From contig NC_067399.1 of assembly GCF_016432865.1 (NCBI RefSeq), positions 578,274,001-578,338,000 on the forward strand: a DNA stretch of 64,000 nucleotides. Reading direction: 5' to 3'. Below the pieces are notes generated by a model. The model was given only the letters and a program-made list of their open reading frames with translations. It ran no database searches and was not told where the DNA came from. The DNA comes from Antechinus flavipes (lineage: Eukaryota). Each line of letters starts with the position of its first letter. Within the stretch, counting starts at the first letter, position 1. A program made the position numbers and the translations under genes. Of the stretch, positions 18,901 through 44,839 are shown in pieces.

Positions 18901-21292
18901 TAGGATTGCAGTCCTCAACTCCAAGGTCCCCAAAGTCCTTCATGGGACCAGGGTCAATGATCTGCATGTTACCGAGCTGGAGTCCCAGAACACACTCTAC
19001 ATGTCAGGTACTGAAATGATACTCTCACCCTGATCTGTCCTGGATAGAGTCACCATTTCCTTATTTAATTTATTAATTCCTATCTTCCTATGGCATTTCT
19101 CCTTCATAATGCTCAAAATACTTCTTGAAATTGATGAAGCTTGGCCAATTATAGAATGAAATACAGTATAGTACTGAGGAAAGAATTCTGGATTTGGAGT
19201 CAAACCTGGATTTAAATCCTAGGACTACTCACTATCTGTGTGACTTTGAGCAAATCATTTAAACTCCCTGGGCCTCTCTTTCTTAATCTCTAAAAAGTAA
19301 CTGGTTGGTATGAATTGATCTTCCAAAGCCTTTGGCTATGATTTTGCTACTTTCTTTCCATTTTGCTCCAGAAGATTATTTGATACATCCTTGCTGGAGA
19401 GAGTATGCTCACAGTTTGGGTATCATTTTTATGAGAGACTATTCAGGCCCTTTCTTCTCCTAGACATCAGGTTTGTGTTCTATAGGGCACCAGAAGGAAA
19501 AATCTGTTTTTACCTCCTCCACTTTAAGGTGTGAGAATTAACAAGGGCACATGACTTGCTGCTATTCCACAGCATATTCACTGAATTTCCTTTCAGGTTT
19601 ATTTGTTAATAGAACTGTTCTCATATTGACCTTGCAGGTGAGAGTGACAGTGAAGAAGAGATAAGCAGTCTGCAGGTGTTGGATGCAGATACCTTTGTCT
19701 TCTGTTGTGCTTCAGGACGACTGGGGCTTGTGGACATTCGCCAGAAGCGGGGTGATTCAGGGAGGACTACCTCGAGCCCTGGACCTGGTGGGGAGTTGTG
19801 GTGTGCTGCAGTTCGAACCAGTGGGCTAGGGTCAGGCCCCACCATTGCCAGTTTGTCTTCAAATGGACAGCTTCAACTCACAGACTTAAGGGACCTTGAC
19901 CATCCAGTGACAACAGTTCAGTGTCGGGTTTCTATGCCCAGTCCAGACTGGGAGTTGCTGAGGGTAACCTGGGCTCCTTCTCTAGATGGCTGCTTAGCCA
20001 TTTCAGGTATCCTTGAAACTGCATATCTGTCTTAACTTTACTTTCTAGGTGATTCCATAAGCTTCTGGTTTTACATTCAGTTTGCTCCTGGTTGTTGAAA
20101 TTTACCTACAAGAGCTCTCAATTAACCCACCACTCAACCATATAAAAATAAAAATAGACAGCCTACAAAGGAACCAGGGAACATGCACGCACACATAGTA
20201 CATATATGTAATTTATGCTCCCAGAAGCTTCTTCATCTTAAGCTAGTAAAACTTTTAAGCACTTAAGATTTAATAGCTTAAAGTTGCACTGAGACTTTTG
20301 GAACACTATATATCTGTATCCATATGATTGGACTATGAGGATTATTATAATTTCTGGGAGACAAGTTTATATCTCTTTACCCTCTGGAATTTGTTTTTGT
20401 TTTTTCCATGAGGATCTTTATTTTTCTTAATTGCAAGAGAAGCGTTAAAGACTAGCAGATATCTTGACTCCCAGTTCAGCATATTAATGTTCTGAGTTAT
20501 GGATATGGGTGGCAGCTTTTTCAGTTTTAAAATCATCCAGTCTTAATGGAATAGATGCCCTGAATATCACCAAAATGTTTATTGGGTCGTCATTGTAGCT
20601 TTTCACTTCCTCCTATCTTGTGATCCATGTTTTAATCGTTTTAGGCAGTTTGATATAGTGAAACAACACTAGATAAGAAGTGAAGAAACTTGATTTTGGT
20701 TCTGGTCCTGCCACTATCTTACTTACTGGGTAACTTTGGGCAGGCCTTGTCTTCTCCTATGCAAGAGAAGGAAATTGTGTTAGAGAGATGTCCTTTTCAG
20801 CCCTTTTGTTAGGATAATGGGTGAAAGAGTGTTTTTAGCCAGCTTTGATATATTTATCAGGATGATTGACTACATTGATTTAGGGAGGATATTATTAACA
20901 TCCCCTTTAGGAAATCTTTCATTTTTAAATTCAGTATCTCTTGGCTGGCTTTATGTCATTTTGAGGAAAGCTTAATACTGTTGATTATTGAGTAACTATA
21001 TACTGCTAATACTGTTTTACCTGGTTTGTTTATTAAATCTTTATTCTATTCATTAGGTTTTGATGGGACTGTCCAGATCTATGATACCATGTCCTGGAAG
21101 AAAAATGGGAGCCATGTAGAACCACTCTTTATCCATAAAGGACATCTTTTCATGGATGGGACTGAGAATAATATGCATTCAATGGTCACCACACATTCTT
21201 GGCACCCCAACAAACCAAGGACATTGTTGTCTGCAGCAGTTGATGCATCTTTGCATGTGTGGGATTGGATAGATCCTTGTAACTCCTGTTGA
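12556..21292 (+). CDS. WDR73: WD repeat-containing protein 73 (8 coding exons, 370 aa)
   Basis: Exons 12556-12596, 13118-13185, 13505-13590, 16011-16099, 18036-18100, 18849-19007, 19638-20006 and 21057-21292, all GT-AG, summing to 1113 nt in one open frame. Translation [32 protein letters not shown]...[13 protein letters not shown]...[18 protein letters not shown]...ASLHVWDW matches WDR73, and exon sizes 41/68/89/65 match the human structure as recalled. Confidence 0.97.
14320..14610 (+). repeat. ~290-bp local duplication, copy A (WDR73 intron 3)
   Basis: Matches 16505-16583 plus 17292-17510 at roughly 90% by eye. Confidence 0.9.
16505..17510 (+). repeat. ~290-bp local duplication, copy B (WDR73 intron 4), split by an L1 insertion
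   Basis: ttttaactgatt...tgtgccttagaaaataaatgcag [L1] gacagaagggaagg...ggagaagttaat. Confidence 0.9.
16584..17276 (+). mobile_element. 5'-truncated L1 (ORF2 C-terminus, 3' UTR, poly A) with 15-bp TSD
   Basis: [34 protein letters not shown]...[17 protein letters not shown] agaaaataaatgcag at 16569-16583 and 17277-17291. Confidence 0.95.
17658..17903 (+). mobile_element. MAR1-type CORE-SINE (MIR core plus RTE/BovB-like tail)
   Basis: Core gggcaaatcatttt...gcctcagtttcctcatc followed by gaaaaggaaatggcaaaccactccagtatccttgccaagaaaa. Confidence 0.8.
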
Positions 21293-25456: not shown

Positions 25457-27299
25457 TAGTTGTTACCACAAAAAATCTTGCTAAAAATGTTTGGGTATGT
25501 ATAAAGCCTTTTTAAAAAATGGTGGTGACTTCACTGGCATATATTGCCCAGAAGTGGAAACTCTGGGTTTGATGGTTTGGACATGTTGGTCACTTTATTT
25601 GAATAATTCCAAATTATTTCTCAGAATAATCACTTCAGTTCACAGCTTCATGTCTTTGCCAGTGATGAATGCATTTGTTGCTTTACTTTCCACAATCCTT
25701 CCAACTTTGACTATTCTCTTCTTTTGTTATTTTTGTCAGTTTGTTGGGCATGAAGTCTCAAGCTCAGATTTCTCTTAACACGAATGACGTGGAACATCTT
25801 TTCATGTGCTTGTTCATAGTTTGCTATAGTTCTTTTGGGAACTGTTTTTTAAATTATTGTTATTAGTGAGCTATTGTGAATGTCTTCGGTTGTCTGTATA
25901 TATCTTGTTCATGAAAATCTTATTGAAGATAAATTTTTTTTCAATTTTGCAAAATCAGAATTAGCTCTTTTGTCTTTTGTAATTGACAATCTTTTTTGAT
26001 TGGGAATCCATCCTAAATCCATAGCTATAAGAAGCATATGTTTTGTTTTGTTTTTTTCTAATAGCATGTAATATTGGCTAAATAGTTCATAATCATTTGA
26101 TTGGATTCTCACAATAGCCATGAAGAAGAAATTTCCTGATCAGAAAAAAGTAAATTGCAGAAATAGATGTTAAGCCCAGTTCTTCTGACATCAAGGCAAC
26201 TGCTGTTTTCCCTGTCCCCTGTAGCTTTTTATTTGGTTTTTCTTCTTTCTAAAGAGTAGTAGTAAAGATCACCTAACACCAAACATGCCTATATTATAAA
26301 TGACTCTAGGGTTCTAATGAGGCCATGTTGAAGGGCTGTAGCAAGGTCATGGCAAATGTTTCAAGTCAGTCAAAAATAATTTTTTATACATGTGGGGTAT
26401 AAAGGTCAACAGGCCAGACTTTATAAGGAATGTTAATTGGATAGGGATTATAGGATGCAGAAATTTGGGTAGCAGAGGAGAAGAAAAATACAGAAAGTGC
26501 TTCAGGGATGATTACTCAGGAATCAGAAAAATATGCCCAAATCTCAATCTTATAAGGAATATCCATCATTTTCTGGACTTCTTTTCCTTGAAAAGGCAAA
26601 AGCTTAGATAACAAAGCTGATAAGAAAAAAAAGAAAGAAAAGAACCCTTAGAAACTAATTAGCTCATAGGTTTTCAAAGTCCCTATATACAAGACTCTGA
26701 ACTGGAGCATCACCTCCTTGTCCTTTCATTTGCTTTCCAGAAGAGATCTAGACATAACGCAAAACTAGCTAGGTGGATTTTTCTCAGTCAATGGAAATAG
26801 AATTTCTAATATGCAAACCTACAATGGACCTCACCATGGCAATCAGTGCTTCCCAAACCCAAGACAAGATCAGCTGTCTGTGAACATGGCTGAAAACAGT
26901 GCAGGGATTTAACAGCGTGGAGTAAATTGGAAATCCAAGAGTGTAGTATTCATGCCCATAGGACAAAATAATTAGAGAACCATTAGAGAGAGCCTGAATC
27001 TGTGGGAAAGAGGGCAAGTGCAGCCAAGCTCATAGCTGACACATATAGAAGCAAGCAGCTGTTTTACTCACTTTAGACTCCAAACTCCTGAAGAAGAGTG
27101 ACTCCTCTTAACTGTATGCACAGTTAGAAGAAAAAGCACCCCCCTTCCCATGAAGTTTTGTAAGTCATAGTACATTTATATAATATAGGCCCTTGGGCCT
27201 CTGATCCTGGGCTTGTAAAATTAGCAAAATGACCTTTTTATGATCCCTCCAAGCTCTAAAATTGAAGACTCTACGATACATAGATGGCTAGGAGACTTT

Positions 27300-27365
27300 A
27301 TAATAATTCAAATCAAACAGTAAGCATTTATTAAGCAAAGAATAGCTCTGGCATACAAAGGTTAA
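27300..27365 (-). mobile_element. L2 3'-end fragment carrying AATAAA on the HYI strand
   Basis: aaacagtaagcatttattaagc...ctctggcatacaaag resembles the reverse complement of the L2 tail. TTTATT at 27327-27332. Confidence 0.55.
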
Positions 27366-27469
27366 ATTTAAACAGTTTCGGAGGAGTTTCCATTTTATCA
27401 GAAGAGATACACATGTTTTGTGGGCTGGTGTCTTAGGAACGGGCAGATGGAGGATGGAGGGGCCACTTC

Positions 27470-28330
27470 TTAAGTTGGGATATCTGCTGGGCTCTCAGCG
27501 TTTCCCGGGGCCAGCCCCCGGCTCTCCCAATAGGCCCGCAGCCAGCCCAACCCTTCATTAGTGTCTCCGCGCGGCCGGTACTCGCAGCCCACGTAGCCTG
27601 TGTAGCCTAGCTCCTCCAATAGCTGAAACAAATAGGGGAAGTTGAGCTCCCCGGGGCTGTCGGGCTCGCCCCGGTCGGGGACCTGGGCCACCTGCACGTG
27701 CCCAATCAGAGGCAAGAAGGCACGGATTTTGGCAGTCAGGTTCCCTCCCATGATCTGCCAGTGGAATATGTCCAGCTGCAGCCGCAGATTGGGCCGATCC
27801 ACCAGGCGCAGGATAGAGGCAGCCTGCTCCGGCGTGTCCAGGTAGTAGCGCGGGTCCGTGAGCCGGCTGTTGATGGGTTCCACGAGCCCCACGAGGTTCT
27901 CGCGGGCCAGCACGTCGGCGGCGTGCCGCAGGTTCTCCACGAACACGGCCTCCATGTCCCGGGCCACGGCGGAGCGCTCAGCACCCTGCGGGACGCGACC
28001 TGCCATCAGATGCACCTGGGGGCAGCCGAGCTCCCGTGCGTACGAGACCGCCAGCTCCAGCCCCTCTCGGAAGGCGTCCTGGCGCCCGGGCACGGCACCC
28101 AGCCCCAGCTCCCCGAGATCCGTAGCCCCTGGCGGTGTGTTGAGCAACACTAGCCGCAGCCCCGTTGTCCTCAAGGCAACCGCCAACTGCGCCGCGGGCT
28201 CCTCGTATGGCCAAGCAACCTCGGCCACCCTGAAGCCAGCCCGGGCTGCGGCCTCGAGGCGCGCGCTCAGCGCCGAGCCCTGCTCCGAGAACAACCACGA
28301 CAGGTTGGCTGCGAAGCGCAGAGGAGCCAT
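27470..28330 (-). CDS. HYI: Putative hydroxypyruvate isomerase, intronless (retrogene), 286 aa
   Basis: Uninterrupted ORF from ATG 28330 (strong Kozak gtcATGg): MAPLRFAANLSWLF...VEPINSRLTDPRYYLDTP...QLDIFHWQIMGGNL...GHVQVAQVPDRGEP...VGCEYRP. It carries the xylose-isomerase-like TIM-barrel E/D/Q/E motifs and is collinear with vertebrate HYI. The ORF-track start at 28405 is a GTG. Confidence 0.93.
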   Translation of the reverse strand: MAPLRFAANLSWLFSEQGSALSARLEAAARAGFRVAEVAWPYEEPAAQLAVALRTTGLRLVLLNTPPGATDLGELGLGAVPGRQDAFREGLELAVSYARELGCPQVHLMAGRVPQGAERSAVARDMEAVFVENLRHAADVLARENLVGLVEPINSRLTDPRYYLDTPEQAASILRLVDRPNLRLQLDIFHWQIMGGNLTAKIRAFLPLIGHVQVAQVPDRGEPDSPGELNFPYLFQLLEELGYTGYVGCEYRPRGDTNEGLGWLRAYWESRGLAPGNAESPADIPT

Positions 28331-28460
28331 GACTGCAGCTCGCTCCGGCAGCTCCCCGCCAAAGTCCTTGCTCGTCCAGGGTGCGCTCCGCCTTTTCCGT
28401 CTCACCTCGTGCCCTCTGGACCCCTCTCTAGCGCCCTTTGCCCGAGAACTAGGGGGAAGG
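27500..28460. promoter_or_regulatory. CpG island covering the HYI ORF and its 5' flank
   Basis: CpG-dense, GC-rich block with sharp edges in otherwise AT-rich DNA. Confidence 0.8.
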
Positions 28461-30399
28461 GTGTGGAGGGGCTGGTACCTGGAAAGATCTAGGGTTCATG
28501 GATTTAGGGTAGGAAGGAACTTCAGAGGCATCTAGTCCGGGCCCTCTATTTTTTTTTTTTTTTAAACAGTTGAGGAAACTGAAGAATAGAAAGTTGAAAT
28601 GACTTTTCTAGGTCACATACAAGGAATCAGGACGTTTAAACTTAAGAGTCACAGGTTTTGAGGAGTCACAATAACAGATTTAGGATCACATAAGTGATTT
28701 GGAATTTGAAAATGACTTTTCTGAGCAGTCATTTGACCAGATCTGTAAATAATAAGAGCTGAGATGAAGAGAACATTTTAAAGTTTGCAGAGCCCTTCAA
28801 TTACCCCACAAGAAATAGGCCAGCTTTTGCCCTCTCTTCTAAGAGAGAATTTAAGTGCTGTAAAAATTAAGCATATATAAAATATATACATATATATATA
28901 AAATATAAAAAACTATATATAAAAAATATAAGTATATTTAAAAATGTAAAAATTAAGTATACATAAAATAAATATATAAAATATATATCTATATAAAATA
29001 GCTTCGAATATAAGGTAATTGGGGGGGAAATGATAAGAGAGTGGGGAGAATCCGAAAGGGTCTCAACTAAAAGGTGGCATTTGAACTAAGGGGCATGTGT
29101 AAAGCTGCATGTGAAGAAATGCAAGAAGGCCACCGATTTTGGCTGTATTAAAAAGTGTGTGAAGGGAGTAATGTATGATAAGGTTAGAGAAGTATCTAGG
29201 AGCCAGTTTGTGAAGGATTTTACATATCAAATAGAGAAGTTTAATTGTAAAGGTAAAAATAAGTTTCTAAGTTTGAATATAGAGGTAAAAAGGAATTACT
29301 TGATTTCAGACCATTTCCAACTGGGTGCTCCCATCTTAGGACATCTTGAACTCAGTATGTTCATATTATAGGTCATTATTGTTCAGCTCAAACCTAGACC
29401 TTAACCTTCCTTATTTATGTGAAGGATATAATGATCTATTTATGTGACATAAATATCCTATGAAGGACATATTTATGTGAAAGATATAATGTCCATGTCT
29501 GCAAGCTTAGGGTCACCCTTAATTTCATAGTCACTTTACATATCCGTTCAGTTGCTAAATGTTGTAATTTTTACTTTCATATCTCTTCGCTCAATGATCC
29601 TTTCCTTAATACACAAACATCATTCTAGTTCAGGCCTGTATCCTTAAACTATTGAAAGTCTCCTAACTAGTCTCACTGCTTCTCTCTCTCCCTTTCCCCT
29701 GCCCTCCACTCCAAGTTGTCCTTTACACAGCTTCCAAAGTGATCATTTTCCTTAGCCATTAACCATGATAACTCTTCTATTCAATAAACTCCAGTTAATT
29801 AAATCCAGTTTATAATCATAAACATTAATAAGGATGTGCCGGGGTTCCTTAAAAGATTAGGAAATGCTAATTCATAAGAAGACTTTTCCCCATCCCATTT
29901 GACTCGTAACTGAAGTCTTAGGCGGTGTCTCATTCATTAAAATTTAAGCTACTTGATAGTAAGGATTATCTTCTTTTTCCATCTGTATCTTCCAAGTCAG
30001 TGATTTGGATATGATAAACACCTAATAAATGTTTTCATTCAGTTATTCCTCCATATGAGGGTATTCTAGGGTCTTCCCTGCTAAGGCTACTTCCAGCTGC
30101 TCTGTAAATGTACTTGTATGTGCCGTGGCTGCCCCCATTAAGTAAGCAGCAGTACTTATGCCTATCTCCATCCCTTATCACAGCGCCTGACACAAGGTTG
30201 TTGGAATCCTTACAAACTCGCACAAGGTAACCGTTTAATATACGAAAGTTGACTGACTGAAGTTCGGAGGAGGAGTAGGTTTGATGGGGAAAGGAGTTTC
30301 TTTTCAGATGCTCGCAGAACAACGAAGTAGAAATGTCCTGGGGACAGCTGGTGAAGCTAGTACGTTACCTCATTAGGTTTCATTTTATACATGAGGAAG

Positions 30400-31000
30400 C
30401 TGGGCTAGCGGCTCAGAAAAGCTTGGTGGGCTGTCAGAGACACAGCTACTAAATAGGGGAGACGGGACTTTAAGCTGATTTCGGGTGCGGCGCCTCGGAT
30501 ACCGCGCTTCGGGGCCCAGCCCACCTTCGCAGAGAACGGCGGCCGCAAAGGCTCAGCTGACAAGAGAATCTCTTCCGAGTCCTTTTTTCTATGGCACCGC
30601 CCTAAAGCTCGGGATTGGGTGGGTTTGAGGGGAGGGGAAAATACAGGGCCGAGGGAAGCCAGAACTACGGAAGCAAACTCGGACTGGTGGGCCAAGCCAC
30701 CGCCCCGGAAGTTTTTAGAGGCGGCGGAAGTCTCGAGCCTTCTCCGCTCGAAGTTTCTGAGAAAGCGGAAGTTGCGATGTTTTCCTGCGAAGCTTGGAGC
30801 TTACCCGGGGGAGGGAGGAAAGAATAGTGCCCGCTTTGCTCTCCAGTTTTCTCGACTGCCCCCTTCCCCGGGGCCCCTTTTCGCCACTCGGACTTCTCTT
30901 GTTCCTCGCTTCCCGCTTGCTCTCCCTTCTCTCGCGGTGGTCAAAGTGAAGACTCCTCTGAAATAGAAATCTAGTCTTGGGAAACCACCTGAAATTCATG
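30400..31000. promoter_or_regulatory. Orphan CpG island with three ETS/GABP-type CGGAAGT sites
   Basis: CCGGAAGT 30705-30712, GCGGAAGT 30724-30731 and GCGGAAGT 30765-30772 in CpG-rich sequence. No coding exon is recognisable in it. Confidence 0.8.
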
Positions 31001-34403: not shown

Positions 34404-35219
34404 AAACTAAGTCAATTCTTAAAGACACTATTTTTTAGTTATTGTTCAGGATACATTCTCAAGACTCTTTACCACATCTCAAGAAACCATCTGTTTTGTC
34501 TCTTCTAAATAACCCAGTTACATTTTCTTATACACAATACCTAATTTCAGATCAAAGACTGTAATTCTTTAACACTATGGAAGCATAGATGTAATTTGAA
34601 ACAATTATTTTTGTATTTCTTCCATCCCCTATCAAGAGTGCATAGTGTAGTCCTATGTATGTAGTAGGCATTTAATATCATGGCTATGAAATTGAATTAA
34701 ATATAGTACCATCACTCATAATCATACCTCATTAAATAAAGATAAACCAAGCTGGCAAATGTTGGTTGTGCTGGTTTAGAGACTAATCTTTGCTTCCATC
34801 CTTCCCTGGAAGAAAGTCTAAGAAATGTAGTCTTTCTTCTTTCATGTCCTCAAATGATGCTGTGCAGTGATGACTGCCCACTTGCTGTGGGTTGACATCC
34901 CTTCTCTGCAGCCAGGTTATAAGACTATACTTGTCACTACTCTGATGGTGATAATGCTAGGGAGTGTATTCAAGGACAGGACTGCCCTCTTCCTATTTCT
35001 GAAGTGTGGGAGCTAAGGCACAGGAACCATTCAGCAATACATCCAGAAGAGAATCTGAAGGATATTTTCTCAGACAAGTGTGCATTTTAATAAAACAAAC
35101 ATCATTTCAGTTGGGTAATGAACTTCAACTATTATAGTCTTTTTCAAATGTGGTATAGAATTAAATATAATAGAAACTTTTCTTTTGGGGTTAATTACCT
35201 GGTATTTGAAACTCGAACC

Positions 35220-35225
35220 TTTATT
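35220..35225 (-). terminator. Candidate polyadenylation signal of the SCAN/Myb zinc finger gene
   Basis: TTTATT on + (AATAAA on -) ~21 nt after the stop at 35247-35249. A longer UTR cannot be excluded. Confidence 0.4.
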
Positions 35226-35246
35226 GACCATAACATTTGGTGCTAG

Positions 35247-44839
<9,593 letters not shown>

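Follow-up and report, generated by a model that had tools for sequence, protein, structure and literature searches.

Orphan retrogenes, which have replaced their parental genes, are a known class in mammals, with RNF113A, MARS2 and TRMT12 among the examples described (Ciomborowska et al., 2013, PMC3548309; Carelli et al., 2016, PMC4772013). An association of these genes with CpG-island promoters was described in both studies, and in Carelli et al. such promoters are reported for 9/10 of the orphan families (PMC4772013). The main text of that study does not mention HYI, which may be listed in its Table 2 and supplements, and in the literature searched no paper was found that links HYI with the terms retrogene, retrocopy, intronless, opossum or marsupial.

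The marsupial HYI gene described here resembles the known orphan retrogenes in being intronless, apparently mRNA-derived, placed at a new locus, under purifying selection and associated with a CpG island. The known examples have no functional parent in their lineage, whereas for marsupial HYI the loss of the parent is judged at the level of annotated proteins. Unlike the cited cases, that of HYI is marsupial-wide and concerns a metabolic enzyme of unknown role in mammals. It is thus a clear but ordinary case that apparently replaced its parent, and it adds a well-supported, marsupial-wide example to a small class. As the best explanation, to which a probability of about 80% is assigned, HYI was retroposed in the marsupial stem and maintained by selection, and its parent was most likely lost.

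The window, i.e., the whole stretch of 64,000 nt of Antechinus flavipes DNA that was analyzed, contains on its minus strand an uninterrupted HYI ORF of 861 nt including the stop codon (286 aa), reaching from an ATG at 28328-28330 to a TAA at 27470-27472 (Table 1). The start codon is embedded in the context GCAGTCATGG, in which both −3 and +4 are G, so that the intact frame and the strong Kozak context named in the initial annotation were both found. The motifs VEPIN, LDxFH, GHVQ and GCEY are also present, in agreement with the intact catalytic-type motifs mentioned there. The gene had previously been annotated as “putative hydroxypyruvate isomerase”. Upstream of the ATG, the frame is open only as far as a GTG at 28405. 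An N-terminal extension of 64-65 residues from an upstream ATG occurs in two annotated proteins, those of Gracilinanus (L009 10001-10192) and Petaurus (P0125). The Gracilinanus extension aligns with nothing in other species and is probably a gene-model artefact.

Table 1. Features of the HYI locus and its neighbors (window coordinates).
Feature	Position	Strand	Evidence
WDR73 exon, neighbor convergent with HYI	19616..20026	+	PDB 8r22_D (WD repeat-containing protein 73), residues 182-303, E 1.6e-46
Candidate 3′UTR, 3′ flank portion that can still be aligned with Monodelphis	27292..27469	-	alignment; no similarity to parental 3′UTRs detected
AATAAA polyadenylation signal, 138 nt past the stop codon	27327..27332	-	conserved in 6/7 marsupials
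HYI retrogene CDS, one exon, 286 codons + TAA	27470..28330	-	colinear over all seven parental intron positions
CpG island over most of the CDS and the start region	27651..28450		GC 0.69, o/e 0.82; equivalent in 7/7 marsupials
Conserved 5′ flank, candidate 5′UTR and proximal promoter	28331..28535	-	68% mean column identity, 7 marsupials; putative function
Second CpG island, 2.0-2.7 kb upstream of HYI	30351..31000		invariant ACTTCCG, TTCCGG, CCAAT
3′ end of upstream SCAN-KRAB-Myb-zinc-finger gene (SCAND2-like)	35047..36364	-	collinear with called gene ends in L003, L007, L008, L009, L010

The antechinus protein matches the xylose-isomerase-like TIM barrel family (Pfam PF01261) over residues 25-266 (E 5e-47) and profile positions 1-248 of 249, with a score of 161.1 bits that exceeds the gathering cut-off of 31.1. 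Its top solved relatives are the bacterial 3ngf and 1k77/YgbM, which align over the full length (E 1e-63 to 1e-64). The PF01261 fold, the full-length alignment and the E/D/H/E-type motifs are shared with the bacterial Hyi (TIGR03234) and OtnI (NF043033; 2-oxo-tetronate isomerase) proteins. However, the scores of 261.6 bits for the NCBIfam Hyi equivalog (cut-off 353.45) and 294.5 bits for the OtnI equivalog (cut-off 325) mark marsupial HYI as a relative and not as an equivalog of either. Since both scores are below their cut-offs, they do not settle the substrate of the vertebrate enzyme, and the name hydroxypyruvate isomerase may misdescribe the substrate of vertebrate-type HYI. Proteins of this type score higher with the OtnI model than with the Hyi model. 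What is known of HYI biology is unchanged by the marsupial retrogene.

In Monodelphis, Gracilinanus, Dromiciops, koala, Trichosurus and Macrotis, the HYI CDS is likewise one uninterrupted stretch, which translates exactly to the respective database protein. In the marsupials, a SCAN-KRAB-Myb-zinc-finger gene precedes it on the same strand, and a WD40 gene of 370-400 residues follows in convergent orientation. By BLASTN, the window is collinear with the six other marsupial loci over about 10 kb in either direction; in the flank queries, window positions 28536-28579 were replaced by N, and the alignments of the upstream flank end at 28535. The initial annotation had placed the insertion between WDR73 and zinc-finger (ZSCAN) neighbors. 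This was confirmed, the same site being occupied in seven marsupials including the American opossums, and an intronless HYI was thus present at the syntenic position in the opossum and koala loci. In Trichosurus, the entire 20-kb locus (L010 1-20828) is covered on the HYI strand by a called gene, the product of which has 211 residues and a Tim17 domain. This gene model is listed in none of the other marsupial loci.

The exon structures of HYI genes outside the marsupials were obtained by mapping each database protein onto its own locus. In platypus, echidna and Chinese hamster, HYI comprises eight coding exons, and the seven introns have identical positions and phases, located after codons 66 (phase 1), 103 (phase 2), 142 (phase 0), 168 (phase 1), 185 (phase 0), 208 (phase 1) and 253 (phase 1). 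The grouse gene has seven coding exons with the last six of these introns. When joined, the exons of all four multi-exon genes yield the respective database proteins. Downstream of the hamster and the grouse HYI, at a distance of 0.7-1 kb, there is a large convergent gene with a product of 3434 or 3632 residues, and the two large genes are orthologous. The last exon of the hamster gene matches the C-terminus of SZT2 in PDB 9v0j and 25ge (E 6e-27). A multi-exon HYI beside SZT2, as initially stated for eutherians, was therefore seen in hamster, and also in grouse. No SZT2 was found up to a distance of 10 kb from the monotreme HYI genes. From the hamster and grouse arrangement, a multi-exon HYI in tail-to-tail orientation with SZT2 is taken as the ancestral amniote state.

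All seven marsupial CDS are without the seven introns, and they are located at the WDR73/SCAN zinc-finger site instead of the SZT2 flank. A TBLASTX comparison of the window flanks with the flanks of the four multi-exon loci revealed nothing in common, compared to hundreds of matches in the Dromiciops control. No non-mammalian HYI was found at the marsupial site, as that of grouse is located elsewhere and has dissimilar flanks. On this basis, marsupial HYI can be classified as a retrogene, i.e., an mRNA-derived intronless copy at a new chromosomal site. The joint absence of all seven introns and a new neighborhood common to species on both sides of the deepest marsupial split are the usual hallmark of retroposition, which is placed before the marsupial crown; likewise, the one collinear site shared by seven marsupials implies that the insertion predates the opossum/Australasian split. 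This agrees with the old retrocopy proposed initially, and the shared site brackets the insertion in time.

Neither an A-rich tail after the 3′ end of HYI (none in 7/7 marsupials) nor a direct repeat bracketing the unit as a target-site duplication could be found, as had been remarked before. These absences are not counted against a retrogene because both are expected to have been erased if the insertion predates the marsupial crown. A T-run at about 28549-28565 was ruled out as the tail of the retrocopy due to its position 5′ of the gene. The local alignment of the HYI 3′ flank with the parental 3′UTRs was no better than with shuffled sequences. As the UTRs show no similarity to parental ones, the case for retroposition rests on intron loss and relocation. 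A self-BLAST of the HYI flanks revealed no other copies within the window. Parts of the flanks (27150-27330, 28440-28535 and 28580-28700) contain stretches such as GAGGAAACTGA and GATCATCTA.TCC, which may be similar to old MIR-type SINE sequence.

In the preferred scenario, a spliced HYI mRNA would have been reverse-transcribed and inserted between a SCAND2-like zinc-finger gene and WDR73, presumably by an L1-type mechanism, in the marsupial stem lineage after the placental split and before the opossum/Australasian split. The copy would have kept its full reading frame within a CpG island that stayed CpG-rich, and strong purifying selection would afterwards have maintained it as an ordinary metal-dependent TIM-barrel isomerase. 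The SZT2-adjacent parent would have been lost, leaving the retrogene most likely as the only marsupial HYI.

Pairwise dN/dS values among the marsupials range from 0.09 to 0.23, with dS up to 0.52. In a codon model of the marsupial genes, omega was estimated at 0.060 (lnL −2393.8, compared to −2636.3 at omega = 1; 2dlnL about 485), and the four multi-exon HYI genes resulted in an omega of 0.107. Furthermore, 95 alignment columns do not vary among 19 non-marsupial vertebrates; 90 of these are likewise unchanged in the marsupials (10/10), and the remaining five show conservative changes in one species each. The purifying selection assumed in the initial annotation was thereby borne out, with dN/dS values of 0.06-0.2, and a dN/dS near 1 combined with disrupted orthologues, which would have spoken for a pseudogene, was not observed: the frame is intact in seven species and dN/dS is significantly below 1. 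From dN/dS, omega and the retention of the invariant residues, the marsupial gene is predicted to be functional and to encode a working HYI-type enzyme, an ordinary metal-dependent TIM-barrel isomerase. The bilby gene (Macrotis, L008 10001-10849) has a GC3 of 0.95, and its pairwise dN/dS values (0.17-0.23) are the highest among the marsupials compared.

The same data bear on the idea that the ORF belongs to a processed pseudogene, young or neutral, and is open by chance, or that it stems from bacterial contamination or horizontal transfer. An intronless, GC-rich unit in an AT-rich region might suggest such an origin, and the family is mostly bacterial. However, seven marsupials from both sides of their deepest split have intact orthologues, and omega = 1 is rejected; by these intact orthologues and the omega estimate, a young or neutral pseudogene is refuted. 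Contamination and horizontal transfer are excluded by the place of the marsupial clade inside mammalian HYI in the protein tree (96/91). In sum, either origin is given hardly any credence.

To which relatives the functional retrogene belongs was seen in a word search, in which marsupial proteins named “putative hydroxypyruvate isomerase” showed 87-92% identity, monotreme proteins 71-74%, and those of placentals and birds about 72%. At 90% identity, the protein of the window clusters with those of Dromiciops, Sarcophilus, Sminthopsis, Notamacropus, Petaurus, Trichosurus, Phascolarctos, Vombatus, Monodelphis and Gracilinanus, and Macrotis HYI forms a separate second cluster. The Ensembl and NCBI entries for opossum are considered the same gene because they differ by a single residue. 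In the protein tree, antechinus HYI is nearest to Sminthopsis and Sarcophilus.

Of the best 120 proteins in the list (down to 395 bits), none outside the three marsupial clusters is named as marsupial, and a second marsupial HYI was not among them; each of the 12 independently annotated marsupial genomes contributed the retro form alone to the named matches, and the unnamed Logan rows have at most 72% identity, similar to placentals. An intact parent should rank near the top of such a list, and for this reason an annotated functional parent is regarded as absent in marsupials. The lack of a second protein fits an orphan retrogene, and antechinus HYI, judged on annotated proteins, is probably the sole marsupial HYI.

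Alternatively, a working multi-exon HYI beside SZT2 may have been missed by annotation or assemblies, in which case the present gene would be a functional extra copy and not an orphan. The comparison covered annotated proteins, and GC-rich loci are sometimes missing from assemblies, which leaves some room for this reading. The consistent result for the 12 genomes speaks against it, as do the constraint on the retrogene, which is at least at the parental level, and the residue conservation described above, which is as expected for a sole copy. A hidden parent is hence considered unlikely. For comparative work, it is relevant that marsupial “HYI” and placental HYI are not positional orthologues; pipelines that rely on synteny may assign the marsupial gene wrongly.

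In a protein tree of 29 taxa, marsupial HYI forms one clade (100/99) within the mammals. In the maximum likelihood (ML) tree, monotremes and placentals are grouped (87/79), and not marsupials and placentals. With a length of 0.24, the stem of the marsupials exceeds those of the two other mammalian groups (0.15 and 0.17). Such a topology would suit a retrocopy older than Theria, which coexisted with its parent until reciprocal loss removed the copy in placentals and monotremes and the parent in marsupials. However, the support of 87/79 is below the starred threshold of the tool, the AU test does not reject a grouping of marsupials and placentals (Theria; p = 0.255), and a long stem can draw the marsupial clade outwards. 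Moreover, two extra losses would be needed, and the placentals among the matches listed show only isoforms of one HYI gene, none marked as a second copy. A pre-therian origin is thus rated as improbable, a little more so than a hidden parent. If it was true, copy and parent would have coexisted for tens of millions of years, and HYI would be a dated example of long-delayed parent replacement. Under the preferred stem-marsupial origin, the long stem is read as somewhat faster evolution after copying.

The HYI ORF has a GC content of 0.672 and a CpG o/e of 0.795 (77 CpG), compared to 0.385 and 0.229 for the window, in line with the CpG-dense gene in CpG-depleted surroundings described initially, and in the flanks the o/e drops to 0.16-0.19 within about 200 bp. 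In 7/7 marsupial loci, a CpG island extends from about −250 to +600/+850 relative to the ATG. The CpG o/e of the marsupial CDS is 0.79-0.91 with a GC3 of 0.82-0.95, whereas parental-type CDS have a lower o/e of 0.57-0.68. The retention of CpG over a long time suggests that the region is hypomethylated in the germ line and contains an active promoter region. In the preferred scenario, the gene would also be expressed. Since the conserved island coincides almost exactly with the inserted CDS, HYI may be a convenient system for studying how an inserted cDNA carries or recruits a CpG-island promoter. At the 3′ end, the parental HYI genes have a polyadenylation signal 18-131 nt past the stop codon, and Macrotis has AAACAAA where AATAAA is conserved in other marsupials.

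The second CpG island, 2-3.5 kb upstream of HYI, is kept in 6/7 marsupials, i.e., all but Gracilinanus (orthologous islands in L001, L003, L007, L008 and L010). The motifs ACTTCCG and TTCCGG (ETS-like) as well as CCAAT do not vary over the six aligned sequences. The island contains no ORF of note and no Rfam family, and the Rfam search revealed nothing on either side of HYI. It may be an alternative HYI promoter or part of an unannotated transcript, and with its ETS and CCAAT motifs it is a testable candidate for a recruited HYI promoter. A motif similar to a splice acceptor, TCTTTCCAG/G, is located at 28479-28487 on the minus strand, some 150 nt before the ATG, and is present in 5/7 marsupials; it could accept a 5′ leader exon. 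The candidate splice donors below the upstream island are not conserved, and for this reason sequence alone provides no support for a spliced 5′ leader.

Window positions 26800-29000 were matched by 24 sequencing runs. Six of these, the kind of which is not specified, contain 73-97% of the sampled words and comprise 3.1-4.5 thousand million letters each, a size that seems typical of RNA-seq and not of mammalian whole-genome data. The other eighteen are small runs with one other organism label from six studies, and all hold exactly 0.17 of the sampled words; four of them are on record as RNA, and the others were guessed to be RNA.
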